Virus record (IMG/VR): IMGVR_UViG_3300035698_035310
Location: 248,001-312,000 of that record
DNA length: 64,000 bases
Direction: 5' to 3' (one strand)
Within the stretch, counting starts at the first letter, position 1, and every line of letters starts with the position of its first letter. Made by a program: the position numbers and the translations under genes. Shown here in pieces: positions 5,375-58,545 of the stretch. The notes beneath the pieces were generated by a model. That model ran no database searches. It worked only from the letters and a program-made list of their open reading frames with translations, and was not told the origin of the DNA.

Positions 5375-5377
5375 CTG

Positions 5378-5428: not shown

Positions 5429-5433
5429 TGAAT

Positions 5434-6748: not shown

Positions 6749-6814
6749 CCCTTGACACTGGTTCAGTTAATCGCTATAACTTAATCAACGAAACACCAAC
6801 AGAAAGACAATCAA

Positions 6815-7111
6815 ATGTCAATCGGACAAACAATCATTAGCCAGATCAACGAAATCGATTTTTGGGCACGCGCCCGTTGGGGTGTAACCGGTGGAACTGG
6901 ACGAAGACCCATCAAAATCGAGAACGGCGTTAAGTTCAAAACGTGCGGAATAGTTAAGTGGAAAGGTTGGGTTTCAATTACCCTGAACGGTATGGACACT
7001 TATGATATCTCATTCTTTCGTATTCGTGCCGGTGAAATTAGGGTTGACAAGGTGGTTAATAATGTTTACAATGACCAACTTGTAACAATCATTGACGAAC
7101 AGGTTGGTTAA
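6815..7111 (+). CDS. hypothetical phage protein
   Basis: TI..QI...V.ITL...DTYDI.F...VYNDQL pattern. Confidence 0.7.
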   Translation: MSIGQTIISQINEIDFWARARWGVTGGTGRRPIKIENGVKFKTCGIVKWKGWVSITLNGMDTYDISFFRIRAGEIRVDKVVNNVYNDQLVTIIDEQVG

Positions 7112-7112
7112 A

Positions 7113-7283
7113 ATGGATATACTTTTAAGTTTTTTCTTCGGATACATATATTTAATATGTTTTATGGTTAGAATATCATGGATTGATACATTTCCAATTA
7201 GGAATTGGAAAGATTTGATCTTGCTTCAAACTTCCACTTATCGCCATTACGACGGCACGGAATCTAAATCTAGGAAATACTAA
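7113..7283 (+). CDS. small membrane protein
   Basis: Hydrophobic N-terminus; stop overlaps the next start. Confidence 0.5.
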   Translation: MDILLSFFFGYIYLICFMVRISWIDTFPIRNWKDLILLQTSTYRHYDGTESKSRKY

Positions 7284-7546
7284 TGACTGAATATCGCATT
7301 GTAACAACACATGATGAAACCAAAGTGACGATTGACGAGCAAACTGCGAGTCAGCTTGCATTGGCTTCAAATGGTGAATGGACACACGAAACCTTTACGA
7401 AGGCTGGTAAATGCAGAGTCCTTGTATTTACTGAAAACCATTCATTGGCTGAACGCGACTATTGGGGCAACGCCAAAATGGTTGTATATATCAATCCTAA
7501 CGATAAAATGGTTGTTATCGAAAAAGACTTGACACTGTATCGCTAA
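7283..7546 (+). CDS. hypothetical protein
   Basis: ORF with AGGA SD. Confidence 0.65.
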   Translation: MTEYRIVTTHDETKVTIDEQTASQLALASNGEWTHETFTKAGKCRVLVFTENHSLAERDYWGNAKMVVYINPNDKMVVIEKDLTLYR

Positions 7547-7591
7547 GACGCTAAGTTCTAATCATCGAAACACAAACAGAAAGCAAAACCA

Positions 7592-7873
7592 ATGACCGAC
7601 GAAACCGAAACCCCCGAATTGATTTCAGTTACAGAATTTTACAAACGGACGGTTAGTTTCCGTGAAAAATTCGGAACCAAACTCGAGCCGGAAATGTATG
7701 CAAATCTCAGCAAGATGTATACGATATCCTACTTTCGAATGGATAACAAAGACCCAATGTGGGACGTCGCCGTTGAGATCTATCAATCAACTATCGATGA
7801 ATTTCATCGCCGTATGGAAATGATGGGATACCCCGACATCACTGAATATGAAATGGTCGAAGACAATGGCTGA
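7592..7873 (+). CDS. hypothetical protein
   Basis: Own promoter. Confidence 0.65.
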   Translation: MTDETETPELISVTEFYKRTVSFREKFGTKLEPEMYANLSKMYTISYFRMDNKDPMWDVAVEIYQSTIDEFHRRMEMMGYPDITEYEMVEDNG

Positions 7874-8072
7874 TTCAGAACGCGACTGTTTGCTGGTGTT
7901 CGCTGGTGAAACTCATTATCCCCTTGGTGGTTACGAGGACTGTAAAGGTATGTTCACCAGCGAAGCGCAAGCAATGGAACACATCGCAAAAATACATTGT
8001 GAATGGTGGCAAGTGTGTCGCATGGATGAACTAATTGGTATGGTTCTTATTAATAGCGGCAAACGAAAATAA
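7866..8072 (+). CDS. hypothetical phage protein
   Basis: LLVFAG..HYP.GG..D.KG.F motif. Confidence 0.65.
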   Translation: MADSERDCLLVFAGETHYPLGGYEDCKGMFTSEAQAMEHIAKIHCEWWQVCRMDELIGMVLINSGKRK

Positions 8073-8136
8073 GTGCTTGACAGTGGTTCAGTTAATTGCT
8101 ATGTTAAATCATCGAAACGAACAAAGGATGACCCAG

Positions 8137-8382
8137 ATGAGAAAAACAATTTTTGCTAACGTTGATCGCAAGCCTCACCAAGCACCCGGCGGCGAGTTTG
8201 AAGTTTTCGACACCGCCACTTCGATGACTATGACGACGGGTATGGGTTGGAAGGCAGCATGGGAAGAATTCGATAAACTCCACGTTGACGGCGATAACTT
8301 AGACGTTCGCCCAAGCACCCCAATTCCTGTTGTTGGTTTCGTTGGTAATATCAATCCGTTATTGTTGACCGAATTTCGTTAA
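8137..8382 (+). CDS. hypothetical protein
   Basis: Start reassigned downstream of the promoter at 8076. Confidence 0.65.
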   Translation: MRKTIFANVDRKPHQAPGGEFEVFDTATSMTMTTGMGWKAAWEEFDKLHVDGDNLDVRPSTPIPVVGFVGNINPLLLTEFR

Positions 8383-8491
8383 AAGTTTCATGGTAAACTA
8401 AGGGTTTTCCCCTACCCGGTGAATTGAGCGCAAGTTCTTCATCGGGATTTTTTTGTCTTGACATTATTAAAACGTCGTGGTATAGTTAAAT

Positions 8492-8605
8492 CTAAATAGG
8501 GTGAAAGTTCAGTTAGACCTAGTTCAAGTAGCCCGAACATTATAAAGATGAATAATTCTTAAACAAACATAAAGGGAAACACCGGAATGATTCCGGTGTT
8601 TTTTT
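8492..8605 (+). ncRNA. candidate ~115-nt sRNA B
   Basis: TTGACA(8458)-N17-TATAGT(8481) promoter, terminator AAACACCGGAatgaTTCCGGTGTTTTTTT, no ORF. Confidence 0.6.
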
Positions 8606-8614
8606 GTCTGGAAC

Positions 8615-8652
8615 CCATAGCATCAACAGGTTTTTTCCTATAGCATCTATGG
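8615..8652. promoter_or_regulatory. 38-bp palindromic operator-like site, copy 2
   Basis: CCATAGCATCAACAGGTTTTTTCCTATAGCATCTATGG, 10 bp upstream of a -35 box. Confidence 0.6.
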
Positions 8653-8720
8653 AATTTTCCCCTTGACTCCTATGGCTTTACTTGCTATGGTTCTATCAAT
8701 TCAAACGAAAGGACAATATT

Positions 8721-9167
8721 ATGATTACCGGAAGTCGCGCACGAATATTGGCAGAAACCACTTGGGGAACTGGTGGGACTCACTCTGCAAGAACCAATCG
8801 CAAAGGTGCATTCTATTATTCGTGTTCAGGACATGGTGGATACATCGTCGACGGTAATGCCCTAACCGTTGCGGAGCGTGATCACATAGACCGATTTAAA
8901 AAACCTGAATATGTATGGGCAATTATCAACGATGAAACCAGTGCGGTTCGTAAAACATCGAACCCGTTTTCAACTAAACGTTTCTTTGCCCATATGCGCG
9001 TAGGTGAAAGACTGGACAAAAACTATCCGATTTATTATTTTGAAGAAGATTGCGACTGGTCAATCCTTGAAAAGTTCACTGACATTCGCGCAGGTGGTAA
9101 GGATACCGACGCAGATACAATTCTCAATATATTCTATCGCTGGTGCCATGATCGCGAGGCGGCATAA
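8721..9167 (+). CDS. DUF7007-like protein
   Basis: SCSGHGG and FEEDCDW motifs. Confidence 0.55.
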   Translation: MITGSRARILAETTWGTGGTHSARTNRKGAFYYSCSGHGGYIVDGNALTVAERDHIDRFKKPEYVWAIINDETSAVRKTSNPFSTKRFFAHMRVGERLDKNYPIYYFEEDCDWSILEKFTDIRAGGKDTDADTILNIFYRWCHDREAA

Positions 9168-9221
9168 AGTGATCAAAGAGGTTACATTTATGTAACCTCT
9201 TTGACTAACTTAAAATAGTTC

Positions 9222-9276
9222 TTGCATTATCGATTGACTCGTGTATGATCATATCAGGGAGGGATCAGCGTTTTTT
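9222..9276 (+). ncRNA. promoter + AGGGAGGGATC unit, copy 4
   Basis: TTGCAT-N16-TATGAT, motif 9256-9267, T-run. Confidence 0.55.
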
Positions 9277-9417
9277 ATGGCGCAAGATTATTACAAAATT
9301 AAGTGAAACAAAGTAATAAAATAATGCATTATTCGGTTGACCATGTTACAGTTATTTGCTATATTTAAATTGTTCCAAGGCACTAACGCCTAACACAGAT
9401 TGAAAGGGAACCACAAA

Positions 9418-9894
9418 ATGTTAAACCGCAACCAAGTAAATGAGATTTTAGCCCCGCTTAACGGAAACACGTTTATCGGCTTAACCGCCACAACGATTCC
9501 AAAATTAACTGGCGGCAAGAAAAACGATATGCAGGGTGAAATCACCAAACGCACCGTTTCTGTTGTTCAGGTTTTCCAGAACAAATCCACGAACGGATAT
9601 GAAAACAAGCGCTTGAAAGCGAATCCAGACTTCAAATTGGGTGATCGCCCTTGGGGAACACGCGTTAAAGGAACACCGTTCATTGAACATAAAGGCGCGG
9701 ATTACATGGAAGTAATTTTCGTAAGCACCGATTCAGTTGATTATTTTCGCAATGGCGAACCAATCGAAAAAGATCAAATCGTTGGTTTGCCTGCCAGCCG
9801 CCCCGCTGGTGATACGGATAATGTAATTATTCGAACATATAAACTGGAAAGCATCGATTCACTTCGGGCGTTTGGGGCGGAATACACCGCCTAA
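9418..9894 (+). CDS. hypothetical phage protein
   Basis: GGKKN.MQG, R.WG.R..GTPFIEHKG..Y motifs; terminator 9910-9943. Confidence 0.75.
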   Translation: MLNRNQVNEILAPLNGNTFIGLTATTIPKLTGGKKNDMQGEITKRTVSVVQVFQNKSTNGYENKRLKANPDFKLGDRPWGTRVKGTPFIEHKGADYMEVIFVSTDSVDYFRNGEPIEKDQIVGLPASRPAGDTDNVIIRTYKLESIDSLRAFGAEYTA

Positions 9895-9953
9895 CCGATT
9901 CATACAAGGAAAAGAAAGTCAAGAGAAATCTTGACTTTCTTTTCGATTCATTT

Positions 9954-9968
9954 GTTCACGTTTTGTTC
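9954..9968. promoter_or_regulatory. alphaproteobacterial-type LexA box
   Basis: GTTC-acgtttt-GTTC (GTTC-N7-GTTC) at the -10 position of TTGACT 9931-9936. Confidence 0.45.
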
Positions 9969-9984
9969 TTATAAGATGATACCC

Positions 9985-10041
9985 AAAAAAAACTCATCCC
10001 TCCCTGATACAAAATTACCACGTTTACCCCATACGAGTCAA
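9985..10041 (-). ncRNA. promoter + AGGGAGGGATG unit, copy 5
   Basis: Motif 9994-10005, -35 at 10036-10041. Confidence 0.6.
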
Positions 10042-10057
10042 CACTTAATTTATTTTT

Positions 10058-10117
10058 ATTTAGGGGGTTGACTCATCTGATGCCTACCTTTATAACTACA
10101 AATAGAAACCAACCACA
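10058..10117 (+). repeat. 60-bp exact direct repeat (promoter cassette), second copy 10553-10612
   Basis: ATTTAGGGGGTTGACTCATCTGATGCCTACCTTTATAACTACAAATAGAAACCAACCACA occurs twice. Confidence 0.9.
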
Positions 10118-10132
10118 TAAGGAATTGCCCAC

Positions 10133-10435
10133 ATGAAAAACACTTACATAAACGCAGTATTCTTTAATGTATCTAACGAAAACGGTTTGGATACGTTTGC
10201 CGATAAGGTCCAGAAAGCATTGGATTGCGAATTGTTTTATTATGAAAATGGTAGGGAAATAGGCGTGGTTACGTGTGGCGGTTCCCCATCTGGCAAGGAT
10301 TACCAGTTTGGCATGGGTGGTGGCAACTTTGATTTGGATCATAACGTGGTGCTATATTCCGAACCCGCTACCGTGTTCGTTATGTTCGATGACGCTAGTG
10401 GTAGCAGGTGCGTTCAGCCAGTAAGCCACCGATAA
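10133..10435 (+). CDS. hypothetical protein
   Basis: Own promoter and SD. Confidence 0.7.
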   Translation: MKNTYINAVFFNVSNENGLDTFADKVQKALDCELFYYENGREIGVVTCGGSPSGKDYQFGMGGGNFDLDHNVVLYSEPATVFVMFDDASGSRCVQPVSHR

Positions 10436-10467
10436 GAAAAGAAATCGGCGCGGGGGCAAATTAGCCC

Positions 10468-10523
10468 TTGCGCCTTTTTTTGTTTCGTGGTATAAAATCC
10501 GTAGGGGGGGATGAGCCGATTTT
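10468..10523 (+). ncRNA. promoter + AGGGGGGGATG unit, copy 6 (variant)
   Basis: TTGCGC-N17-TATAAA, motif 10503-10514. Confidence 0.5.
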
Positions 10524-10630
10524 ATCATCAAAATTTATTTTAATAATAGTGCATTTAGGGGGTTGACTCATCTGATGCCTACCTTTATAACTACAAATAG
10601 AAACCAACCACAACCCCGAAGGAACTTATC

Positions 10631-11008
10631 ATGCAAAAAGTAATCGCCCACATCGAAGCAATCAACGCAGCAACCGGCAGCACTTGGGTTTTGAACGCGG
10701 ATCATTGGGCTGGCTACGAAATAACCACACCCGAAGCGTTTGATCGTTATGTGCTTACCACAAGCATTTGGGATGCATACAAATATGGCTTGGGCTTTAA
10801 GCCACACGGCATGATGATGGAAGCAATGAGCATGGAACAGTTGGAACGCGAACTGGAAAGCGTTCGCGCTTCAATCGATGCGAACGCCGAACACGAAGCC
10901 GAACGGGAACGGGTGAACAATTTCACTTGGCAAGAACATCTTGCTTGCGCCAACATGCCAGCAATGGCAAACGACTCCCCCTTCGCAGTGTTGCAGGGGG
11001 TGCGATAA
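10631..11008 (+). CDS. hypothetical phage protein
   Basis: HW..Y.ITT...F.RY....I.D.YK...G.KP motif. Confidence 0.7.
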   Translation: MQKVIAHIEAINAATGSTWVLNADHWAGYEITTPEAFDRYVLTTSIWDAYKYGLGFKPHGMMMEAMSMEQLERELESVRASIDANAEHEAERERVNNFTWQEHLACANMPAMANDSPFAVLQGVR

Positions 11009-11060
11009 CCAACCGAAAGGGGCGGGGGATTTTCCCCCGTTTTTTCGCGCCAGCAATTCC

Positions 11061-11117
11061 AAAAAAAAGACATCCCTCCCTATGGTGATATTAGCACTAT
11101 TGCCCAAACAGAGTCAA
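11061..11117 (-). ncRNA. promoter + AGGGAGGGATG unit, copy 7
   Basis: Motif 11070-11081, -35 at 11112-11117. Confidence 0.6.
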
Positions 11118-11271
11118 CACTTATTTTCGCCCCCAAATTTCAGGCATCACCCAATCTTACCACGTTTTCGAATTACAAGTCAACCCCCTATTTTAATTCA
11201 TTTAAGGGGTTGACTCTGTTTGGGTTGGGTAGTAATATCCCTTTATCAACTTAACAAAAGGAAACAAACAC

Positions 11272-11661
11272 ATGGATTCATTAAACGTTTTTGCGGATTC
11301 GAAAGTTGGCGATGGTGCAACGATCAATATGTATAGCGATTCAAAGGCTTGCACGATTGTGGCGATTAGTGATAAGCGTATCACGGTTCAATATGACGAT
11401 GTTAAATTGTTGAACGGTGCGAAATCTGGCGAACCCGATGCACTGGTTTTTGATGTAGGCGGATTTTCCGCACACTGTTCAGGTCGCCAGCGTTGGGAAA
11501 CAACACCAAACCCCGAAGGCGGCAAGGTGACTTATTCCCTGCGCAAGTGGAACGACTACAAAAATGAACCAGTTATGCGGTGGGCACCAGTTGGCAGCAA
11601 ACGCCACGAAGGTTCAGGCTTAACCGAAGGAAGGCATCACCACTACGATTTCAATTTCTAG
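11272..11661 (+). CDS. hypothetical phage protein
   Basis: VGDGAT...YSD..A.TI start and GR..HYDFNF end. Confidence 0.75.
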   Translation: MDSLNVFADSKVGDGATINMYSDSKACTIVAISDKRITVQYDDVKLLNGAKSGEPDALVFDVGGFSAHCSGRQRWETTPNPEGGKVTYSLRKWNDYKNEPVMRWAPVGSKRHEGSGLTEGRHHHYDFNF

Positions 11662-11724
11662 GCACAAGGAAAAAGGAGAGTCAAGAGAAATCTTGACTTT
11701 TCTTTTTTTATTTTTTCCGCCGCC

Positions 11725-11779
11725 AAAAAAAGGTCATCCCTCCCTACCACCATAATACACTATTCGAACAACGAGTCAA
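11725..11779 (-). ncRNA. promoter + AGGGAGGGATG unit, copy 8
   Basis: Motif 11734-11745, -35 at 11774-11779. Confidence 0.6.
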
Positions 11780-11785
11780 GACTAT

Positions 11786-11918
11786 AAACGGGGAACCACG
11801 AATGATTCCCCGTTTTCTTTTCTATAATGGCTTGGCTTGCCGTGTCGCCAGACGATTAGATCATGATGTCAAATCCTTCCGTTAATTTTTATCCGGTGTT
11901 TGAACTTACTCTCTACAC
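11786..11918 (-). ncRNA. candidate ~130-nt sRNA C
   Basis: TTGACA(11947-11942)-N16-TATTAT promoter, terminator 11786-11816, no ORF. Confidence 0.55.
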
Positions 11919-12020
11919 CATAATACATTAAACAAAATAGATGTCAACACTTATTTTAGGGGTTGACACTAACAATCGAAACCGCTATAACTGTATCAAC
12001 TTAACCAAAAGGAACACCCA

Positions 12021-12230
12021 ATGTCAAACCAAGCATTTGTAGTTTATAACGGCAAAATCACAGTCAAGACTGAGATTTACGACGGCGGTTTATATTTCGC
12101 CGACACCGTGAAAGAAGTGACACAACGCTTGCGCGATTGCGAGACGTTGGTTGTTAAATCTGGCAGTGAACGCGACCTTAAGAAAATCGTCACCGTCGCC
12201 GACCTTTTCACAAACAATCCCCAAGGATAA
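12021..12230 (+). CDS. hypothetical protein
   Basis: Own promoter and SD. Confidence 0.65.
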   Translation: MSNQAFVVYNGKITVKTEIYDGGLYFADTVKEVTQRLRDCETLVVKSGSERDLKKIVTVADLFTNNPQG

Positions 12231-12234
12231 GACA

Positions 12235-12729
12235 ATGTCAAATCCCAAACACATAAACGATTTTTGCAAAGAACTTCGCGCACTTATGGAAAAGCACGGA
12301 ATTGATTCATTAGGTGTCGAAATTGAGGGCGACACACACGGCATAAGTGAACAATTCGTTATCGATGATAATCAAAATAAAACACACGTGATCGACGGAT
12401 TTTCAAGTTATTTGGATAAATCAGATTTGCGTGATTATATCGAAGTAACCAGCGAATTATTGAAACGCGACGACGTTCAATTTGTTATCAACGATTTGCA
12501 AGATGATGGAGAAGAAAGTTCCGCTAAACTTTTTGAAGACTATATCATCAAAGCGGAAAACAACGGCTTAAACATCGACCAAGCATTCCAAGGCACTATC
12601 GCACTAAGGGAAGCAATGAATATTATGGGAAGTTATTTCGACGCCCTGAATACTAATAATCTTGTTTTTGTTAATCAAATCAATGCGATTGATTCAGCAA
12701 TGCTACATTATAAAGATAGTTTAAAATAA
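12235..12729 (+). CDS. hypothetical protein
   Basis: Start reassigned to the ATG after AAGGA. Confidence 0.7.
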   Translation: MSNPKHINDFCKELRALMEKHGIDSLGVEIEGDTHGISEQFVIDDNQNKTHVIDGFSSYLDKSDLRDYIEVTSELLKRDDVQFVINDLQDDGEESSAKLFEDYIIKAENNGLNIDQAFQGTIALREAMNIMGSYFDALNTNNLVFVNQINAIDSAMLHYKDSLK

Positions 12730-12790
12730 CCGTTGACACTGGTACATGAAACCGATATAACTGTATCAACTTAACCAAAAGGATCATATC

Positions 12791-13150
12791 ATGGAAACAA
12801 TATCGCGGTTTTATGCGCACGCTGGCAAAATTGCCATAACGATTGGCGCGGGTGATACTACATATATCACCACAGACCAAGCCGAAATGATCGGCGCTAA
12901 ATTATCTGAACTTGCCAGTCAAGTGAAAAACGGCAATCATTCGACTACGGTTGAAGTTCCCGCAACTGAAGAACAAATGAAACGGATGCGTGAGGATGCG
13001 CCCGAAATTTATAAAATCATTCGTTGTTATCGCAATGGCAATAGCCCCCGCACAATTGCACGTAGTGTAACGATTTTCGAAGCGCAAGAACATTGTAGCG
13101 ATCCATCAACCTCAAACACCAAATATTTTGATGGATATGAGTTGAAATAG
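12791..13150 (+). CDS. hypothetical phage protein
   Basis: C-terminal YKIIR.Y...EAQ.HC.DP.T...FDGY motif. Confidence 0.7.
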   Translation: METISRFYAHAGKIAITIGAGDTTYITTDQAEMIGAKLSELASQVKNGNHSTTVEVPATEEQMKRMREDAPEIYKIIRCYRNGNSPRTIARSVTIFEAQEHCSDPSTSNTKYFDGYELK

Positions 13151-13210
13151 GTCTTGACTCTGGTGTAGTTAGTTCGTATATTAACTACACCAGAACAAAG
13201 GAACAAACAA

Positions 13211-13351
13211 ATGTCAAACGCTGAAATGTATCTCGATTGGGTTAACAATTTTTTAACTGTTGCACGGTTCGCCGAATATTACAATATCTCCGAGACCGAA
13301 GCTCTTGCCGTGATCGAAAAAGGTCGCATCGACCACCACGCAAATCTGTAA
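13211..13351 (+). CDS. 46-aa small phage protein
   Basis: Below track cutoff; MYLDWVNNFLTVARFAEYY; own promoter and SD. Confidence 0.7.
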   Translation: MSNAEMYLDWVNNFLTVARFAEYYNISETEALAVIEKGRIDHHANL

Positions 13352-13369
13352 ACAACGAAAGACAAACCC

Positions 13370-13669
13370 ATGCAAGTCACAACCGAACAACTCGAAACTT
13401 TCCTAACTAAAGCGCAAGCACATGTAAACGCTGATTACAGCACTAACTTTGAAGGCGATGCGCCAACACTTTCGATTGACCCAATGACCGAACGATCTAA
13501 GTACGCCAAAATCGTGAAAGATACCGGTCAACGTTCATTGTGGGGTTTCGTTGAACTATCAACCGGCAATCTGTTGACAGGCAGTTGGAAAGCACCACGC
13601 AAATCAAAATCAACATGCGGTCATATTGACGAGCCATTCTTACCACGGACTCGCTGGATGAGTGTATAA
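13370..13669 (+). CDS. hypothetical phage protein
   Basis: Y.KIV....S.WGFV....G.L....WKAP motif. Confidence 0.7.
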   Translation: MQVTTEQLETFLTKAQAHVNADYSTNFEGDAPTLSIDPMTERSKYAKIVKDTGQRSLWGFVELSTGNLLTGSWKAPRKSKSTCGHIDEPFLPRTRWMSV

Positions 13670-13735
13670 TAAACCCTTGACTCTGATTCAGTTATTCTTT
13701 ATAACTGAATAATCAGAACAACGAAAGAAAATCCA

Positions 13736-13912
13736 ATGGTAGGCAAACTTAATTTTCGTGTATTCCAAGATGGCAAACAACACATTGTTTCCGCACGTAG
13801 CATCGTGGTTCGTTTTGAACAAGGTGCATTCATATCAGCTAACATAAGACAAGATAGTGCCGAATATCTTGAAGCATGTGAAGCAATGGTTAAACATGAT
13901 ATGGGCGAATGA
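13736..13912 (+). CDS. 58-aa hypothetical protein
   Basis: Below track cutoff; follows promoter at 13677. Confidence 0.55.
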   Translation: MVGKLNFRVFQDGKQHIVSARSIVVRFEQGAFISANIRQDSAEYLEACEAMVKHDMGE

Positions 13913-13913
13913 T

Positions 13914-14093
13914 ATGACTGAAATTGCACAAGGCACTGAAGTCAAATTAAAATTCATTAACGGCGAAAATCGTTATGGCGCACTTATGGATAATCGAAAA
14001 AAACATTTGATTTATCGCCCCGTTGATGGTATCAATACCATTGTTTTTCATAAAGACTTGAAAAGTGTTGCACCCGTATATATTCCATCTTAA
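13914..14093 (+). CDS. small hypothetical protein
   Basis: ORF following the previous stop. Confidence 0.55.
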   Translation: MTEIAQGTEVKLKFINGENRYGALMDNRKKHLIYRPVDGINTIVFHKDLKSVAPVYIPS

Positions 14094-14122
14094 TAAAAAC
14101 AACAGCCGGAGTCACTTAGGTG

Positions 14123-14176
14123 TTGACTCCGGCATTTTTCCTGCTAATATACTATCAGGGAGGGATGAGTAAAATT
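14123..14176 (+). ncRNA. promoter + AGGGAGGGATG unit, copy 9
   Basis: -35 embedded in terminator hairpin GCCGGAGTCA..TGACTCCGGC; motif 14157-14168. Confidence 0.55.
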
Positions 14177-14284
14177 CGCCCCGAAAAAAACTTTCATTTT
14201 ATTTCATTTAAGGGGTTGACTCTGATCGGGTTGGGTAGTAATATCACTACATCAAAACAAACCAACAACCCAAGGAACAAAACC

Positions 14285-14869
14285 ATGGCAACCGATAAAA
14301 ATGGCTTAACACTTTCAAACGCTTCTGATTCTGGTTATAAATTTGTAACTACTTTGTTTGAAGGACCGCTGGCTGGAAAGTTCGTCGCCTTCGCGGATGT
14401 TAAAACCGCCGAATTGCAACGCCTGAACAAATCTCACGCGCACGGAATAAACGGTTTCTTTGGATTCAAAAACGTTGTTCCGTTGGGCGTTTTCGATGAT
14501 GTGCGCGACGCCGCATACGTTGGACAAACATTCCACGCAGGGAACGCAGATGACCGCGACGACAACCTTGCCGAATTATACGCTGGCAATGAGTCAGTTA
14601 TCCCTAAATCATTGACCGATTGGGATAATCCCGCCGATGTTACTTCAATGAAAAAAGCCGCAACCCGCGCAAAAACCCGACGCATGGGTAAAACATTCGA
14701 TGCAAAAAAAGCCGAGACCGCAATCGATAAGTTTGCCAACAATTTCAAATCATACAAAATCGGTAACATGGATGTCCGCGTAATCTTGGAACGCATGAAA
14801 GAACTGTTTGATAACGGAACAAGCTTAACCCTTTCCGCCGAAACCGTTTGCTCCGATTACCAGCGATAA
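14285..14869 (+). CDS. hypothetical early protein
   Basis: Start reassigned to the ATG after AAGGA; LG.FDD.RDAAY motif loosely AP2-like. Confidence 0.7.
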   Translation: MATDKNGLTLSNASDSGYKFVTTLFEGPLAGKFVAFADVKTAELQRLNKSHAHGINGFFGFKNVVPLGVFDDVRDAAYVGQTFHAGNADDRDDNLAELYAGNESVIPKSLTDWDNPADVTSMKKAATRAKTRRMGKTFDAKKAETAIDKFANNFKSYKIGNMDVRVILERMKELFDNGTSLTLSAETVCSDYQR

Positions 14870-14930
14870 CCCTTGACTCTGGTGTAATTGATAAGTATAA
14901 TTGATTACACCAGAACAAAAGGAATTTAAC

Positions 14931-15203
14931 ATGGATAAACGCGATGTGATTGTAATTTGCGTTGGCAGTGCCGCCGATGATATACGCGCACTTAATCACG
15001 CAACAAACTCCGCAGTTCTAGTCGTTGAAGATAAACCCGCAATTCACGAAATGGCATTGATGGATGATATATTTTTAACCGATGAAGCAAAAGATATGTT
15101 TGTGCTTGAATTAATCGAAGACGCGTTGCCAAAGAATTTTCTAAGTGAACCAAAACCCCGAAAGGCTTGGAAAAACGAATTCGAAAATCTAGGTCGTAAA
15201 TAA
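14931..15203 (+). CDS. hypothetical protein
   Basis: Own promoter and SD. Confidence 0.65.
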   Translation: MDKRDVIVICVGSAADDIRALNHATNSAVLVVEDKPAIHEMALMDDIFLTDEAKDMFVLELIEDALPKNFLSEPKPRKAWKNEFENLGRK

Positions 15204-15227
15204 ATCAAAACCAGAGTCACTTAGGTG

Positions 15228-15282
15228 TTGACTCTGGATTTCTTTCTGCTATTATACTGTCAGGGAGGGATGACTTTATTTT
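15228..15282 (+). ncRNA. promoter + AGGGAGGGATG unit, copy 10
   Basis: -35 embedded in hairpin CCAGAGTCA..TGACTCTGG; motif 15262-15273. Confidence 0.6.
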
Positions 15283-15297
15283 ATTCCCGCACTTATA

Positions 15298-15398
15298 ATA
15301 AAAGCCAGACTCGCGTCTGACCTTTATCCTTTCTTTCTATCCGGTTTATGTCCGCCACGTCGGGTCGGAACTATGTATCGCCGAACGCGTCGGCTAGA
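15298..15398 (-). ncRNA. candidate ~100-nt sRNA D
   Basis: TTGACA(15431-15426)-N16-TATTAT promoter, GC-rich hairpins, terminator GGTCAGACgcgaGTCTGGCTTTT. Confidence 0.55.
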
Positions 15399-15512
15399 TT
15401 TATATAATACCACAACAACCAAACATGTCAACAAAAAAGATTCAATAATAACACTTGACTCCGTTTGGGTTGGGTGTATACTATCCATAGATTGAAACAA
15501 AGGATTAATCAA

Positions 15513-16433
15513 ATGGCAAAAGCAACCCGCACCAAAATCGATCATGAGCAACAAATCACTAACGCTATTGTCGCCCACGTTGAAGGGTATATCGCCGCCG
15601 AGGCTACAGGCGAAGAGATCGCACGTTGGGAAAGCCCCTTCGGAAAATTCTTCCGTGAAGGCCATTTTTGCGCCGCAACCGATAACCAGTATAAAGGCTG
15701 GACTAACAATTTTTTCCTTACACTTATGGCGCACGCAAGCGGATTCAATTCCGATGCATGGGGAACATTCAAGCAATGGAAAAGCATGGGAACGGATGAA
15801 ACACCCGTATCTGTTAAGCATGGTCAAAAAGGTTCCGCTTGGATTGCTTTTCCATATATCAACAAAGATAAAGTAACCGGCGACGACACCGTAACCGGAT
15901 TCGGATATCGCGCCGTATTCAATGCCGATCAAATCGAAGGATATACGCCCGAGGTTGTTGAACTACCAGAGTCGCAGGTTGTGCAACATGCCAAAGCTGA
16001 AACATTCTTGAAAAATCTGGACGTAACATTCCAGCATATCGGAAACCGCGCTTTCTATAGCCCTGCTAGTGATGCAATCAGCATGCCCCCAGAAGGCGCG
16101 TTTAAGGCGACTGAATACAGTACCGCAACCGAAGGCTACTATGGCACCAAGTTTCATGAATACGCCCACGCAACCCTGCACGCTAGCCGGTGCAATCGCG
16201 AACAAGGCGCGGATAAAGCTTCATACGCTTTCGAAGAGTTGGTCGCCGAATTGACCTCGACTATCCTATGTTCGCGCTTTGGTATATCCGCACAACCACG
16301 CGAAGACCACGCTAAGTATATACATTCATGGTTGAAAGCACTGAAAAGCGACAAGACCATGATTATGAAGGCAATGAAGAAAGCAAGCCAAGCAATCGCT
16401 TGGATGGATAAAAAGCAACCAACATCAAAATAA
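15513..16433 (+). CDS. ardC: ArdC-like antirestriction protein (ssDNA-binding domain + zincin-like metallopeptidase)
   Basis: Y.G.N, W.TFKQW....V..G.KG, VFN.DQ.EG, AFYSP..D.I.MP, HEYAH.T, YAFEELVAEL, YI.SWLK.L. Confidence 0.85.
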   Translation: MAKATRTKIDHEQQITNAIVAHVEGYIAAEATGEEIARWESPFGKFFREGHFCAATDNQYKGWTNNFFLTLMAHASGFNSDAWGTFKQWKSMGTDETPVSVKHGQKGSAWIAFPYINKDKVTGDDTVTGFGYRAVFNADQIEGYTPEVVELPESQVVQHAKAETFLKNLDVTFQHIGNRAFYSPASDAISMPPEGAFKATEYSTATEGYYGTKFHEYAHATLHASRCNREQGADKASYAFEELVAELTSTILCSRFGISAQPREDHAKYIHSWLKALKSDKTMIMKAMKKASQAIAWMDKKQPTSK

Positions 16434-16494
16434 AAGGTTGACAGTAAGGATATGATATCGTATTATATCCTTACTGAAACGAAAGGAACACACA

Positions 16495-16596
16495 ATGACA
16501 CACGGTAACGGCAAGATCAGGCGATTCGCAGGCAATCTAGGGGCGCTAATGCTGGCAGCGCTGGCAGGCTACGCGACGCTGGTGGTCCTAGCATAA
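16495..16596 (+). CDS. 33-aa hydrophobic peptide
   Basis: Own stem-loop promoter and AAGGA SD; last gene of the early block. Confidence 0.55.
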   Translation: MTHGNGKIRRFAGNLGALMLAALAGYATLVVLA

Positions 16597-16799
16597 CGCC
16601 AGAACCGAGTCAAGCACTTATTTCACGGTGTTGCACTTATGACACAGTCAAGTCTTTTATTATAAAATAAAAATAAAAAAAGACTTGACATTCGAAAAAA
16701 AGAGTGCTCGTGCAGTGTTTTGAAGTTTTTTATTTAATGGATACCTTACCCTTAGCTCGAAATACGCCAAAATTTTTCAGGCTAAATCGGAACTCTGGC

Positions 16800-16894
16800 T
16801 ATCGTGACACTTATCGTGACAAAATGTCGCGATACCATTATAATGGGTCATTTATTCATCCTATCGTGACATTTGACCCATTATAATGGGTCAA
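16800..16894. repeat. iteron/palindrome cluster
   Basis: TATCGTGACA x3 plus inverted TGTCGCGATA; perfect 22-bp palindrome TTGACCCATTATAATGGGTCAA plus a partial second copy. Confidence 0.8.
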
Positions 16895-17004
16895 TACACC
16901 CCCCACCCCCTTTTCTATGAAACACTTATTCATTCAATATAAAAAAAATTCTGCGCCAAAATTTTAATAAATAATATTAGGTTTTTAACATAGGAACATT
17001 TAAC

Positions 17005-17160
17005 ATGAAAACATTATCCGATAAACAACATGCTACCATTAAAGAGAACATGCGTGCTATTCCAAAAGCATCATATACAGACATTGATCGCACCGCAGTT
17101 CTTAAAGAAGAATATGCTGAATTTATAAAAAATATCAACGAAAGCGACAAACCAGAATAA
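17005..17160 (+). CDS. 51-aa hypothetical protein
   Basis: AGGA SD; downstream of an ATAAATA late-promoter-like motif. Confidence 0.6.
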   Translation: MKTLSDKQHATIKENMRAIPKASYTDIDRTAVLKEEYAEFIKNINESDKPE

Positions 17161-17163
17161 ACA

Positions 17164-17595
17164 ATGAGAGCATCCGACTTCATCGCTGAAACACTTATAT
17201 CTGTTTCGCACGGAACCAATACCGATTTTGATCAATTAGATGTGGCAAAAACATCCGATGGTGGAATTCACTTTGGTTCCAATCAACAAGCAGCGTTACG
17301 ATCAACTGGAAAAAATTCGCGCATCATCGATACACAAATTGATGTTAGAAAACCAAAACGTTGCAAAGACGATGGATCAGGATGGAAAAACAAAATAAAA
17401 TCCGCCAAACGTTCTGGATATGACAGTATTGTATATTTGAACCGTTATGAAAATATGACCACTGAACGAGTAGAACAGTTATCACAATCCGGCAAACTAG
17501 ATACTTTGGATTCATTATCCGATGCCGCATTCAAAAAATTAGTTCCTGAAGCACAAGACAGTTATATTGTGTTCGACAACGATCAAATAAAATAG
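17164..17595 (+). CDS. ART-PolyVal-like (ADP-ribosyltransferase fold) protein
   Basis: HGT...F, GIHFG...A, GYDSIVY.N..E, SYIVFD..QIK. Confidence 0.6.
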   Translation: MRASDFIAETLISVSHGTNTDFDQLDVAKTSDGGIHFGSNQQAALRSTGKNSRIIDTQIDVRKPKRCKDDGSGWKNKIKSAKRSGYDSIVYLNRYENMTTERVEQLSQSGKLDTLDSLSDAAFKKLVPEAQDSYIVFDNDQIK

Positions 17596-17605
17596 GACAC
17601 TTATC

Positions 17606-17992
17606 ATGAGAGCATCCGAAATCACAGAAACAACAACGTCTTTAAAATGGGCAACCCGCAACCCATCACCAAAAGATTATGAAATAGTTATGATCGACAT
17701 TAAAGCACTTATGGATAATACCAATCGCATACAAAAAATTTCATTATCTGCTGTAACCAAAGCAGACGATGAAAACATTATAGGTGATCGCGTTTCAAGA
17801 GCAAAACAATTTTGGCTAGATGGTGGCGAAATGCGACTATCAATGGTTGGATACAGTGATTATTCCAAGATGGTAGACTTCACCGACGGTAGACACCGCC
17901 TAATAGCCGCGTATCAACTTGGTGAACGCCATGCACCCGTATTGGCAGACAAGGACGGCATAGAAGAATTTAAAGCGCTGGTAGGGGCTTAA
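17606..17992 (+). CDS. ParB/Srx-like N-terminal domain protein
   Basis: DGRHRL.AA..LG....PV. Confidence 0.6.
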   Translation: MRASEITETTTSLKWATRNPSPKDYEIVMIDIKALMDNTNRIQKISLSAVTKADDENIIGDRVSRAKQFWLDGGEMRLSMVGYSDYSKMVDFTDGRHRLIAAYQLGERHAPVLADKDGIEEFKALVGA

Positions 17993-18067
17993 AACCCATC
18001 ACCCCCAAACTATATTGACACCGTAAAACCACAATGATATACTTATTCTTTAATAAAAGGAAATAAT

Positions 18068-48982: not shown

Positions 48983-49627
48983 ATGAAAAGAACACATCAA
49001 GCAGAAAAAATAAAAGATACCGAGGTTTTGGGTATGCCAGAATCGGCAAAAGAAATGGTAGCAGTAGGTTCAGAAAAACATCAAGGGTTGATGAATAACG
49101 GCGTCTATATATTAACTGGTGAAATAAACTCAGTATGTGCAGAAGATGTTCTCGGATATATATTAGAAGCAAATTTAAACCCACAATGTGATTGGGAATA
49201 TATTACGATGATAATCAATAGCCCTGGTGGTTTTGTTTCTGATGGATTTGCGATAATTGACGCAATGTTTGGAAGTCACATACCAATAAAAACAGTTGGT
49301 ATAGGCATGATTGCCAGTATGGGTTTACAGATATTTCTAGCTGGTCAAGAAGGATCAAGAATGTTAACGCCCAACTGTATGATATTAAGCCATCAATTTA
49401 CTGGTGGTGCCTATGGTAAAGAGCATGAATTGGTTGCGGCACAAACCGAACAACATATATTGTCTGATAATATCATGAGACATTATAAACGCACCACGGG
49501 TATGTCTAAAGACGATATTAGAAAATATTTATTGCCCCCCGAGGACGTATGGCTTACCGCGAAAGACGCTAAGAAATATGGCATATGTGATGTTATAAAA
49601 GACTTAAAACCAAAAATATTACTATAG
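48983..49627 (+). CDS. clpP: ClpP-like protease
   Basis: INSPGG.V..G.AI.D.M, G..ASMG, R...PN...LSHQ, D.WL.A..A..YG..D. Confidence 0.9.
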   Translation: MKRTHQAEKIKDTEVLGMPESAKEMVAVGSEKHQGLMNNGVYILTGEINSVCAEDVLGYILEANLNPQCDWEYITMIINSPGGFVSDGFAIIDAMFGSHIPIKTVGIGMIASMGLQIFLAGQEGSRMLTPNCMILSHQFTGGAYGKEHELVAAQTEQHILSDNIMRHYKRTTGMSKDDIRKYLLPPEDVWLTAKDAKKYGICDVIKDLKPKILL

Positions 49628-49636
49628 GAAACAATT

Positions 49637-50119
49637 ATGTCTTACAATGTACCATCAGCATCAGCGGCAAAAACTAGTTCAATGGATGGACCAGGGATAG
49701 ATTTTCAATCACTTATTGATAAATCAAGAAAAATGGGATTAACACCAGATATTCGCGATATGATTATTTCATTTGAAGATTGTAAAAATATTTTAAAAGC
49801 TAAAGAAGTTGAATTAGATACGCTACAAGCTATAGTAATGGAAAGCGATGATGAAAATATATCTACATTGCGAGAGGAATTATTTATTGTCGCAAAATTA
49901 TTATATTCAGATGTAATCGAAGATGTAATAAAACGAGAAGTAAATGATACAGAAGTGAAAATGGATAATCACTTTGACATTAACGAGAAGTCAGTAGCGG
50001 CGGATGTTACATCTTGGAATATCATAAATCGTATTTCTGAGTATAGACGGAAACGCCGCATATATAGCGAAAATCTTACTAAAATAAAAAAGAGATTGAA
50101 AGAAAACGTAGGATTATGA
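49637..50119 (+). CDS. hypothetical protein
   Basis: ORF. Confidence 0.65.
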   Translation: MSYNVPSASAAKTSSMDGPGIDFQSLIDKSRKMGLTPDIRDMIISFEDCKNILKAKEVELDTLQAIVMESDDENISTLREELFIVAKLLYSDVIEDVIKREVNDTEVKMDNHFDINEKSVAADVTSWNIINRISEYRRKRRIYSENLTKIKKRLKENVGL

Positions 50120-55391: not shown

Positions 55392-55679
55392 ATGTATCAA
55401 GAGAAAAAACTCGAAAGAAGAAGACGTGACTACTTAAGAATGAAAGAACGTGCTAGACACGTTCAAGCCCGTTGGTGGGATACCCATCACACTGATCCTG
55501 ACTTACATGACGCTGCAAGTAAGTTAGCCAACACTTTAAAATTATGTTCATGTTCATTGTGTGGAAACCCACGCCGTGATAATGTTTATGGCGATACATT
55601 AACGATGCAAGAATTAAAAGCACTGGATGATTCAAAAGATCAGTTAAAATGTTTTTTAGAAGAAACGCTTGACATATAA
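55392..55679 (+). CDS. small basic Zn-ribbon-like protein (CSC..CGNPR)
   Basis: Arg-rich N-terminus, CSCSLCGNPRR...T.QE; structured leader 55340-55380. Confidence 0.7.
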   Translation: MYQEKKLERRRRDYLRMKERARHVQARWWDTHHTDPDLHDAASKLANTLKLCSCSLCGNPRRDNVYGDTLTMQELKALDDSKDQLKCFLEETLDI

Positions 55680-55744
55680 ATATCATGTGTTATATTGTAT
55701 AAATAAGTTTAACGAATTAACCACTATTCAAGAAAGGAAATATT

Positions 55745-56170
55745 ATGTTGTAGATTAATACTGCTACCAAAGACGAAACCTTTGATCCCATGATGGATCA
55801 AACATTGCGCATGTATGCGATTGAGCGCGGTGATTTGGATATGACAAGAGGGAAGTGTTCTTCTCAAACAGGTCATGCATACAAACTTCTAACAAAAAAT
55901 GTGGTAGAGAATAACCCAACACTATCGAACGAATACTTCGATGATGGCATGGGAACTAATGTCACACTTAAATCCAAAAATCTAAGTCAACTTGAACGTG
56001 CCTATGACAATGCATTGGACGCGGGGCTTCCTTGTGTTTTAATCACTGACGAAGGGCATATAATGCCGCCACACTTCGATGGTGAACCTATTGTCACGGT
56101 TATAGGCATTGGCCCATGTAGGCGTGCCGAAGTTCATCACATCACCAAAAAATTTAACTGTGTAAAATAA
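55745..56170 (+). CDS. peptidyl-tRNA hydrolase (Pth2 type) with in-frame TAG at codon 3
   Basis: R.DL.M..GK...Q..HA, V.LK, GLP...I.D.G, TV.GIGP; SD AAGGA precedes ATG TTG TAG ATT... in frame with track ORF 55790. Confidence 0.8.
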
Positions 56171-56182
56171 AGGAGATATAAA

Positions 56183-56569
56183 ATGACAAATCAAACAACC
56201 ACCGAGACATATTGGATTTTTAAATACACGAATAAGGAAGGGTTCTATCAAGATCAAAGCAACAGTGGTTCACGTAACTATATCGAACCTAGAACAACGG
56301 ATATCGAATACGCTACAAAATATAGTGAATATACTATTGGTGATCATGCCATTTGGGTACGTAAGAAAAAAGAACCAATGAAACCAATTCAGATCAAGGA
56401 GACACGAACTTATCAACAAGAAGAACTTGGCGAAGAGGCACTAGGATATATTGCTACTGAAGAACTGAAACAAGCAAGCCGTGCAGAGAAAAATGCTATT
56501 CAACGACGCGAACAAGAGAGAAAAGAATATGAGCGTTTACAGAAACTATTTGAAGAAGAAGGAGAATAA
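56183..56569 (+). CDS. hypothetical protein with C-terminal EYERL coil
   Basis: AGGAG SD; KEYERLQKLFE. Confidence 0.7.
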   Translation: MTNQTTTETYWIFKYTNKEGFYQDQSNSGSRNYIEPRTTDIEYATKYSEYTIGDHAIWVRKKKEPMKPIQIKETRTYQQEELGEEALGYIATEELKQASRAEKNAIQRREQERKEYERLQKLFEEEGE

Positions 56570-56571
56570 TT

Positions 56572-57006
56572 ATGAAATGGTTTGATAAAGAAGAATTATT
56601 TGATATCACAAAATCCAACCCAGAAGCAATTCGTGAGATTTGTCAATGGTTTAATGATCGATGTGATGAAATCCATAGCGAAGAGCGAGAAGTATCTATT
56701 GATGATAACAATGTTAATATTTCATATTCATGGGAAGATAATTTCCGAGGGTGCCATATGGGAACTGAAACAGAATATTTTGAAATCCCCAATGAGATTT
56801 TCTTTTCGGATTATTCACTAAGTGCTTGGCAGCGTGAAGAGGCTGATCGTATAAAAGAAATCGCTGCGAAGGAAAAAGAAGCCGAAGATAAAAAAAAGAG
56901 AACGCAAGCTAAACGCGATAAGACTCTTGCAACCAAGAAAAAAGAACAGAAAGACAAAGATGAATATGAACGATTGAAAGAAAAATATGAAGGAGAAAAA
57001 AAATGA
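56572..57006 (+). CDS. hypothetical protein with C-terminal EYERL coil
   Basis: AGGAG SD; DEYERLKEKYE. Confidence 0.7.
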   Translation: MKWFDKEELFDITKSNPEAIREICQWFNDRCDEIHSEEREVSIDDNNVNISYSWEDNFRGCHMGTETEYFEIPNEIFFSDYSLSAWQREEADRIKEIAAKEKEAEDKKKRTQAKRDKTLATKKKEQKDKDEYERLKEKYEGEKK

Positions 57007-57569
57007 CTATGTGTACAATGAGATTAGCGATGATTGCATGTGATCAAATGGAAGGATTATCCATTTTGCAACATGGCGAAAGCGTTGCTTCATATTATAA
57101 AGATTTGAAGTCTCACTTACAACACGGAACGGATTTAAAATATGAGTGGCGCATGCCTTCATGGATTAACAACCCGTTGATATTAAACAATTTGCTATCT
57201 GATGATATTATGGAAACGTATCACATTTATCATGATTGTGGAAAGCCAGTGTGTATTAAATGGGACGAAAATGGGAGACGACACTTTCCTAATCATGCTG
57301 AAGTGTCAAAACAAACTTGGTTAGAAAACGGTGGCGACCCTTAGATTGCTAAATTAATTGGTATGGATATGGATATTCATACTATCAAAGCAGACGGTGT
57401 AGAAGAATTTGCATCAAGGCCCGAAGCGATTAGTTTATTATTGACGGGTTTGTCGGAAGTTCATTCTAATGCATCAATGTTTGGTGGAATAGAATCGACG
57501 AGTTTTAAAATCAAATTTAAGCAGTTAGAAAAGCGTGGTAAGAAAATCTTAGCATTGCTTGAAAAATAA
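57003..57569 (+). CDS. HD-domain protein with in-frame TAG at codon 114
   Basis: QHG, YHDCGKP, HFPNHA..S, then GGDP*IAKLIGMDMDIH...EVHSNA; track ORFs 57003 and 57363 share one frame. Confidence 0.75.
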
Positions 57570-57625
57570 ACGGCACACGTGATACAGCCGGAACCAATGT
57601 ATCACTTTATATAAGGAGAAATATT

Positions 57626-57943
57626 ATGACTACATTTACTTTTAAGACTCGTAACGAATATCTTACACAACGCGCTGAATGGAAAGCAGATTATAAAGCA
57701 TTGAGCCAAACCATTCGTGATTTGAAAGGACAACGCAAACAGTATACATGGAAATATGTTCCAAAGGGCAAGAACATTAAAATGGGCGACAACCCACGAT
57801 ATGATTCTACTGCTGGTTGGAGTGCGGTTGCACTTAAATATAAGGCAACTAAAATGTTAGAAGACCTTGCTGAAGCTAAAATTGAGGCAGGTAAGCAACG
57901 TGAATATCGCATTGCTAACGAACAAGAAGCAGCAGCAGCGTAA
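57626..57943 (+). CDS. basic helical hypothetical protein
   Basis: F.TR.EYL..RAEWKA.YK.LS..IR.LK; AAGGAG SD; terminator 57953-57978. Confidence 0.75.
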   Translation: MTTFTFKTRNEYLTQRAEWKADYKALSQTIRDLKGQRKQYTWKYVPKGKNIKMGDNPRYDSTAGWSAVALKYKATKMLEDLAEAKIEAGKQREYRIANEQEAAAA

Positions 57944-57996
57944 CATATTAATGGGGGCCATAGTGCCCCCGTTTTTTTCAACATTAGGAGAACAAA

Positions 57997-58545
57997 ATGG
58001 CAACACTAAAAGAACACAAAGAGCAATTAGTAAAAATGAAACCATCTAACATTTGGACGGATGATGATTTAAAAAAACGTGCACAAAATAGAAAATCGTT
58101 ACACACGTAGTTTCCATATGTTATAACATATAAAGGCTATTATGGATTGCATGATACAATGGTCGATTGGTGCCGTGAACAATTTAGCGACATGTATGGC
58201 GAATGCGATTGGGATGATTGTGATTTGGGATGGGAAAAATGGCACGACAATATAGGGCTACAAGGTCAACTCGACAATGAATTATATGACGAAATATTAT
58301 TTGATAAAGGCAGCGAACTTCATTATTGGTGGCGCACATTAATTATTGAAACACATTACGACATAATAAAAACTGAATACTTTCCAACACAACCGGGCGA
58401 TCATTGCCATCAGGGAACATGGAGAAGTAATTTCGTAATTAAAACTGGATATGATTATGGATATCAAGATTATTGCTTCAAAAACGGCGAAGACGCGTTC
58501 TATTTCAAGATAATGTGGGACGAAGAAGTTTTTAAAAGAAATTGA
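57997..58545 (+). CDS. hypothetical protein (F....DA..FK..W family) with in-frame TAG at codon 38
   Basis: AGGAG SD + ATG 57997; ...KSLHT*FPYVITY... continues in frame into track ORF 58147. Confidence 0.65.

Follow-up and report, generated by a model that had tools for sequence, protein, structure and literature searches.

A suppressor tRNA as putative translational switch of amber-interrupted PTH2 and HD-motif genes in a standard-code giant phage

In crAss-like and Lak phages, which use code 15, stop-codon recoding with phage-encoded suppressor transfer RNAs (tRNAs) has been described as a translational regulator (Borges et al., bioRxiv 10.1101/2021.08.26.457843). For the suppressor tRNAs of phage XacN1, no target gene could be identified (PMC5852040), and the papers on Atu_ph07 (PMC6102473) and RsoM2USA (PMC8504454) mention potential targets that are not specified. 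In this study, we analysed a stretch of 64,000 nucleotides, hereafter called the window, covering positions 248,001 to 312,000 of the IMG/VR record IMGVR_UViG_3300035698_035310 (359 kb in total), and in particular a module of 2.8 kb in which three plus-strand genes are interrupted by one in-frame TAG each, namely genes for a PTH2-type peptidyl-tRNA hydrolase, an HD-motif protein, and a third, Cys/His-rich protein. Based on the data below, we are fairly confident that in this phage, which has a genome of about 570 kb and the standard code, a suppressor tRNA gates the translation of a module for the recycling of tRNA ends and peptidyl-tRNA. Moreover, the sequence comparisons, in which an in-frame stop of this kind proved to be conserved for both families in more than a hundred giant phages, point to PTH2 and its HD-motif partner as the long-sought targets of the 'orphan' suppressor tRNAs of giant phages.

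As in code-15 phages, a phage tRNA-CUA would decode in-frame TAGs, and the stops would gate chosen genes at the post-transcriptional level. Unlike in those phages, the code of the window phage is otherwise standard with TAG still terminating genes, and the gate is a single codon, usually codon 2–9, on two families of tRNA-related enzymes instead of structural and lysis genes; the gate of PTH2 and HD is furthermore conserved across very distant giant phages, where it adjoins the tRNA. With the 'orphan' suppressors of XacN1, Atu_ph07, and RsoM2USA, our case shares the background of a standard-code jumbo phage and a tRNA with the anticodon CUA or UCA, but specific targets (PTH2 and HD) are proposed here. 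A further parallel is prfB, the gene for RF2, likewise a translation-factor gene with an early in-frame stop (UGA in prfB), the decoding of which reports the state of termination. In prfB, however, the ribosome shifts to the +1 frame and the product of the gene itself is sensed, whereas in the window phage there is no change of frame and a tRNA gene of its own provides the decoder; a feedback loop would be hypothetical here. The bar minigenes of phage lambda consist of ATG-NNN-stop behind a strong Shine-Dalgarno (SD) sequence and are toxic when Pth is limiting. They would resemble the gates described here in the two-codon open reading frame (ORF), the strong SD, and the link to peptidyl-tRNA hydrolase, but they are out of frame with the downstream gene and tied neither to one stop codon nor to a suppressor tRNA. 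The literature searched, the coverage of which is incomplete, did not yield any account of PTH2 or HD genes being gated, so that an earlier description is possible.

Interrupted genes and their relatives

The three TAGs had been noticed in a prediction made from the window sequence alone (in the following, the original prediction), and re-reading of the sequence placed them exactly where it had put them, i.e., at 55751, 57342, and 58108. A second copy of the phage is present as a contig of 570,549 bp (k141_202852) in the European Nucleotide Archive (ENA) assembly ERZ27315719 and also in Logan assemblies. The ends of the ENA contig meet near 24.7–24.9 kb of the window, so this assembly is circularly permuted. 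Over 10.4 kb including all three TAGs, ERZ27315719 and the window are identical in their bases; thus, an assembly error is unlikely, in agreement with the original view that sequencing errors are the less probable explanation. A megablast search with the locus revealed no DNA match among the GenBank phages searched. For all further analyses, the pieces on either side of each TAG were treated separately, and relatives (loci with the prefix L) were sampled via homology searches of IMG/VR. All features of the module named below lie on the plus strand.

The PTH2 gene (55745–56170) matched Pfam family PF01981 with 66.1 bits against a cutoff of 23, spanning profile positions 2–113 of 115, and additionally phrog_1866 and the archaeal Pth2 structure 2zv3 (E-value 1.8e-9). 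By family assignment, its product is a bona fide PTH2-type peptidyl-tRNA hydrolase, and the enzymatic activity is predicted. Its amber gate (55733–55753) is composed of the SD sequence AAAGGAA, 6 nucleotides before the ATG, the codons ATG TTG, and the TAG at 55751–55753, which is followed by ATT; behind it, the frame is open from 55754 to 56170 with the domain starting at about 55808. With regard to start signals, the upstream ATGs of the three genes are preceded by an SD, as predicted, though the prediction needs to be amended for PTH2, which does possess two in-frame ATGs (55790 and 55793) ahead of its domain, neither of them with an SD.

A profile search yielded 80 PTH2 loci, from which 51 non-redundant genes on viral contigs were retained. 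The nearest upstream in-frame stop was TAG in 42 of them, TGA in eight, and TAA in one, compared to TAG in 161 of 593 control ORFs (27%) from the same loci, so the TAG of PTH2 proved to be conserved among homologs. An in-frame ATG was located 1–8 codons before the TAG in 35 of the 42 TAG-bearing genes, 30 of these with an SD, and there is usually no ATG, GTG, or TTG between the gate stop and the conserved core. The relatives examined first all displayed the same arrangement in frame, i.e., SD, ATG, a few codons, and a stop, mostly without any other start before the core. Most often, the leader consists of ATG and a single further codon, and L233, to which the window phage is most closely related among the syntenic loci, likewise carries ATG TTG TAG. 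In L207 (2960–3000), the PTH2 leader harbors two in-frame TAGs in the order ATG, six codons, TAG, four codons, TAG. More distant PTH2 genes, e.g., those of XacN1 and Xoo-sp13, have a normal start.

The HD-motif gene starts with a normal ATG and comprises 113 codons (57003–57341), the internal TAG (57342–57344, context CCT TAG ATT), and a further 74 codons plus stop (57345–57569). Compared to phrog_14850 (270 positions), the two pieces aligned colinearly to positions 89–186 (E-value 1e-27) and 197–266 (E-value 2e-26), and both can be aligned without gaps to intact jumbo-phage proteins such as those of RsoM2USA and pT24, the second piece being 72% identical to RsoM2USA gp91. The column of the TAG is occupied by a sense codon in 15 relatives from viral contigs and by Gln in the three closest groups (L005/6, L007, and L009), which suggests Gln as the amino acid inserted at UAG. 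A nearest-neighbour comparison of the suppressors with about 680 other phage tRNAs was uninformative in regard to their amino-acid identity.

In a sample of 62 non-redundant HD-family loci from viral contigs, including PTH2::HD fusions, an N-terminal TAG gate was detected in 53, namely in 42 stand-alone genes and 11 fusions. The window copy is the exception, since it lacks the N-terminal gate and is the sole one among the 62 members with a stop inside the domain; the gate seems to have been relocated to a unique internal TAG at the Gln column. Cultured phages revealed both arrangements: the HD gene of RsoM2USA has the N-terminal gate ATG AAA TCG TAG, while GAP32 carries an independent internal TAG at a position other than that of the window. 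The HD dipeptide is invariant in the family. The HD pieces of the window had no match in Pfam, and the pT24 homolog matched the HD domain (PF01966) weakly (E-value 0.06). In the PTH2::HD fusions, the N-terminal domain passes the Pfam cutoff for PTH2, and the fusions in L005, L011, L013, L014, and cultured pT24 open with ATG, 1–7 codons, and TAG. In L016 (7706–8041), a phage transfer-messenger RNA (tag AKTQKAKIP) was identified inside an array of 26 tRNAs, beside an amber-gated HD gene and a tRNA-CUA.

An AlphaFold2 (AF2) model of the L013 fusion protein reached a predicted local distance difference test score (pLDDT) of 89. Its N-terminal domain adopts a Pth2 fold in the model and matched the structures 2zv3, 1wn2, and 3erj with template modelling (TM) scores of 0.72–0.77. 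The C-terminal domain is helical in the model; its best Foldseek matches in the PDB were 3wfq and 3wfr, complexes of a class II tRNA nucleotidyltransferase with tRNA (E-value 0.015), which were also retrieved weakly with a sequence profile, and the HD enzyme PhnZ appeared as a weak Foldseek match. In this modelled structure, the HD-motif protein resembles the tRNA-binding part of CCA-adding enzymes (the structure match with E-value 0.015). Natural fusions together with the close synteny indicate a joint action of PTH2 and its HD-motif partner, whose target is probably the 3' end of tRNA or peptidyl-tRNA.

Regarding the sequence context of the stops, the original prediction had proposed the rule UAG-[A/U]UU, which did not hold among the relatives: a purine directly follows the stop in 35 of 38 PTH2 gates and 48 of 54 HD gates (83/92 altogether). 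A purine at this position reportedly favours amber suppression, as is said of the work of Bossi in 1983 and of Miller and Albertini in 1983. Judged from its distribution in the two families, the gate of PTH2 and HD is of ancient origin and subject to selection throughout the giant phages.

The third gene (57997–58545) has an AGGAG before its ATG at 57997 and consists of 37 codons (57997–58107), a TAG (58108–58110, context ACG TAG TTT), and 144 codons plus stop (58111–58545). The downstream piece revealed 20 homologs of 170–217 amino acids, which are 40–62% identical and cover 91–100% of it. These homologs run about 40 residues further at their N-termini, and the upstream piece aligns to this extension (P0002–P0020). 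Since both pieces align to the same homologs, they represent one gene of 182 codons. The product has conserved Cys and His residues, and at the TAG column, directly before an invariant FPY, 11 homologs have R, E, K, or D. With colinear pieces in HD and the third gene and an open frame behind the TAG of PTH2, the coding sequence assumed by the original prediction on both sides of each stop could be verified. Of the three TAGs, that of PTH2 is shared with relatives. Those of HD and the third gene are specific to the window lineage, as the relatives have no TAG at these positions; in L233, where a tRNA-CUA is located within the module, the third gene is uninterrupted. For these two lineage-specific TAGs, we infer a role in the gating.

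Two observations speak for regarding the stops as ordinary nonsense mutations or sequence errors in three decaying pseudogenes: neither the HD nor the third-gene TAG occurs in any of the relatives examined, and the module has lost the tRNA-CUA next to it, which is still present in L233, its closest relative. We nevertheless consider decay improbable. Apart from the identical second assembly, the TAG of PTH2 is kept in most of the diverged relatives with intact ORFs, a TAG is present somewhere in nearly all HD-family members, and none of the three genes of the window contains a frameshift or a second stop. Furthermore, both lineage-specific stops are TAG, for which the chance probability is about 0.06 (about 25% of the one-step nonsense paths in the genome give TAG), and the phage has retained a promoter-driven tRNA-CUA. 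The weightiest argument against chance comes from the comparison with relatives.

Suppressor tRNAs of the window phage and its relatives

ARAGORN, also with its intron option, detected no tRNA in the window and in L032, and no Rfam family was found there; likewise, the 48 kb downstream of the window revealed no tRNA. Candidates obtained at a low ARAGORN threshold were rejected as noise within coding regions. A search in the rest of the genome, as proposed along with the original prediction, led to a tRNA-CUA gene about 26 kb before the start of the window, among early-type genes (rIIB-like). It is present in two assemblies (L340:9907–9980, equal to L339:20208–20281, minus strand) and is the only tRNA in the approximately 148 kb of this phage surveyed. 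The gene has 74 nucleotides with the CCA end encoded, and a promoter (TTGACA-17-TATATT) is located directly upstream. Its T-arm differs from those of the tRNAs in L233 and L025, and a search pattern built on the latter missed the contig.

In the anticodon stem of this solitary tRNA gene, the three pairs next to the loop are all G:C, along with a normal G1-C72 pair. Such a set of pairs is a typical mark of initiator tRNAs. The idea that an initiator-like tRNA-CUA starts translation at UAG was nevertheless rejected because the internal gates require an elongator and most suppressors of the family, unlike that of the window phage, do not have the three G:C pairs.

In the relatives, 33 of 52 PTH2 loci and 25 of 53 HD loci have a tRNA-CUA, as detected by ARAGORN, at a distance of up to 3 kb and in the same orientation, and the linked tRNA often ends 11–45 nucleotides before the TAG. 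The type of stop follows the anticodon of the suppressor in four cultured phages and L203. While RsoM2USA, pT24, and GAP32 combine a TAG gate with a CUA suppressor, Atu_ph07 has a TGA gate and UCA as the only suppressor or non-canonical anticodon among its tRNAs, and L203 combines a TGA gate with a tRNA-UCA. Altogether, the conserved stops, the linkage to the tRNA, and the phage's own tRNA-CUA support the originally proposed local readthrough module served by, e.g., a phage suppressor tRNA; depletion of RF1, also named as a trigger in that prediction, received no support in this form.

The match between stop and anticodon also bears on a quite different reading of the short leaders, in which ATG-x-stop is a regulatory mini-ORF of the bar minigene or attenuator type, and PTH2 and HD are produced independently of any suppressor by termination and reinitiation at a non-canonical codon, e.g., sensing the drop-off of peptidyl-tRNA. 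The commonest leader indeed equals a bar minigene in its ATG plus one codon, the gated product is a peptidyl-tRNA hydrolase, ATT directly follows the stop in four of the first seven PTH2 gates examined, and the PTH2 of the window has downstream ATGs. Against this, TAG accounts for about 82% of the stops versus the background of 27%, and the stop is TGA where the suppressor is UCA. Most cases offer neither a start codon nor an SD downstream, the internal gates (HD of the window, HD of GAP32, and the third gene) could not reinitiate without splitting a domain, and the two in-frame TAGs of L207 do not fit either. We therefore think it unlikely that the leaders act in this way, and decoding by the suppressor is the reading followed below.

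About 22 kb downstream of the window, L229 (12617–13528) encodes a protein of 303 amino acids with a class II aminoacyl-tRNA-synthetase core (Pfam tRNA-synt_2b and 2d), a homolog of which is located about 400 bp from a tRNA-CUA in L236 (6335–7111); it is a candidate for the enzyme charging the suppressor. Beside the tRNA-CUA of L233, two odd tRNA-like genes were detected (6564–6810), one with an anticodon loop of 6 nucleotides and the other with its ends split by an insert of about 100 nucleotides. L339 contains, between genes for DUF723 and DUF7678 proteins, a region of 1.8 kb (10736–12544) in which no gene was called and neither a tRNA nor an Rfam family (E-value of 0.1 or below) was detected.

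Stop-codon usage and genetic code

All fetched loci were scanned for the arrangement SD, ATG, 1–8 codons, stop, and an ORF of at least 90 codons, regardless of gene family. This resulted in 81 events with TAG, 18 with TGA, and four with TAA. Since 49 of the 81 TAG events matched PTH2 or HD motifs and about 22 of the remaining 32 unclassified ones also appeared PTH2-like by eye, the gate is specific to the PTH2 and HD families.

Within 112 kb of the window phage (the window and 48 kb downstream), the three genes of the module were the only convincing interrupted ones, in line with the original observation that no other internal TAG is apparent. The underlying codon-score scan of ORF pairs gave a noisy output, above all for the antisense strand, that was checked by eye only; genes interrupted by TAA or TGA were not noticed in it. 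TAG ends eight of the 103 called genes. The predicted number of eight such genes was thus right, though the set differs in that it includes the TAG at 52844 and excludes that at 141.

As TAG still ends these eight genes, genome-wide recoding does not apply, as had been stated from the start. In detail, code 15 (TAG read as Gln), either genome-wide or in late genes as in crAss-like and Lak phages, would account for the tRNA-CUA, for the alignment of the HD TAG with Gln, and for TAG being the rarest stop codon, at 9 of 103 genes. However, an ORF-length test in which each stop was removed in turn gave no signal, with ORFs becoming barely longer without TAG as a stop, and large genes, including those for the capsid protease and the DNA polymerase, have no in-frame TAG. 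In addition, the interrupted genes all belong to one non-structural module. A code-15 phage is thus a very remote prospect, and we retain the standard code with a local, suppressor-dependent gate.

The gene for the prohead (head-maturation) protease (region 48983–50119) ends with the TAG at 49625–49627, and three codons further on, an in-frame ATG opens an ORF of 160 amino acids without a family match. With the suppressor present, readthrough at this TAG would result in a fusion of the protease with this ORF.

Proposed switch and neighbouring genes

Based on these results, the following mechanism is proposed. The suppressor tRNA gene, located in the early-gene region, would be expressed from a promoter of its own, and the full-length products of PTH2, HD, and the third gene would need decoding of UAG by this tRNA, which would therefore act as a trans-acting translational switch. 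In its absence, translation would end with the dipeptide Met-Leu in PTH2, with codon 113 in HD, and with codon 37 in the third gene. That suppression takes place and the readthrough proteins are made is what the conservation and linkage of the gates lead us to infer. The gate might couple the output of the enzymes recycling tRNA ends and peptidyl-tRNA to the time and extent of suppressor activity, which is a guess on our part. A possible purpose would be to tie these enzymes to the period of suppression and hence of drop-off or non-stop stalling; the gate could also serve as a timer or provide feedback on the suppressor itself.

A broader proposal, which we put forward tentatively and regard as possible rather than probable, is that giant phages share a dedicated circuit, complete in itself, that consists of the suppressor tRNA and the amber-gated PTH2 and HD genes, with the tRNA as the specific translational activator of enzymes acting on peptidyl-tRNA and the 3' ends of tRNA. 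Such a circuit may be a feedback or checkpoint that senses whether the tRNA pool is intact or charged, e.g., in view of host defences targeting tRNA or of a takeover of termination, and gating would then be the primary reason for 'orphan' suppressors in standard-code jumbo phages.

Several observations weigh against suppressor gating. Efficient suppression would also extend the eight genes that end in TAG. In the window phage, the tRNA-CUA lies about 82 kb away from the module, unlike in most relatives, and the in-frame ATGs of its PTH2 gene, 12–13 codons past the TAG, might permit some gate-independent translation by reinitiation. The TAGs of HD and the third gene could be recent nonsense mutations, either tolerated thanks to the suppressor or inactivating. 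A few members of the family, among them L180 and L197, carry the TAG without a recognisable upstream ATG. Finally, the counts of relatives are phylogenetically not fully independent, as the sampling of IMG/VR was anchored in homology; at 60% identity, the PTH2 genes form 22 clusters, 15 to 16 of them with TAG.

In regard to existing annotations, the gene starts in the GenBank entries PV764938 (Phosso), MF403008 (Atu_ph07), and LC168164 (pT24, BPT24_235) were placed at internal Met codons, and the HD gene of GAP32 appears in JN882285 as three fragments (GAP32_398, GAP32_398A, and GAP32_399), since the in-frame stop was taken as a terminator. Due to the start at an internal Met, the annotated PTH2 proteins of Phosso and Atu_ph07 lose conserved residues. 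A systematic mis-annotation of gated genes, truncated at internal Mets or fragmented, is thereby exposed. At the same time, the purpose of the lone amber or opal suppressor tRNA carried by many cultured and uncultured standard-code giant phages gains concrete candidates, and the question becomes testable in the cultured phages RsoM2USA, pT24, GAP32, and Atu_ph07. The gate may also be stop-codon recoding at an early or minimal stage, with one tRNA in control of a tiny regulon.

Apart from the interrupted genes, the module starts with a sigma-70-like promoter before the PTH2 operon (55669–55696), a consensus match of 11 out of 12 positions composed of TTGACA, a spacer of 16 nucleotides, and TATATT with a TG element. 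Between PTH2 and HD, two ORFs of 128 and 144 amino acids (56183–57006) have no family match; in L233, an ORF of 145 amino acids occupies the equivalent place. Downstream of HD, a protein of 105 amino acids (57626–57943) is encoded, a conserved neighbour of PTH2 and HD that showed synteny with L019 and L158 in tblastx, followed by a hairpin with a T run that resembles an intrinsic terminator in its sequence (57950–57973).

Outside of the module, the first part of the window (1–18000) has a higher G+C content (40–44%) and densely packed small ORFs, many of them with TTGAC-type promoter-like motifs upstream, and resembles an early-gene region. Downstream of the window, a cluster of genes for tRNA and RNA repair and for translation was identified in L229–L231 (equivalent to window positions 64–95 kb), comprising two RNA ligases, a polynucleotide kinase/phosphatase-like protein, a protein similar to class I lysyl-tRNA synthetase (LysRS), and genes for the salvage of nicotinamide adenine dinucleotide (NAD).

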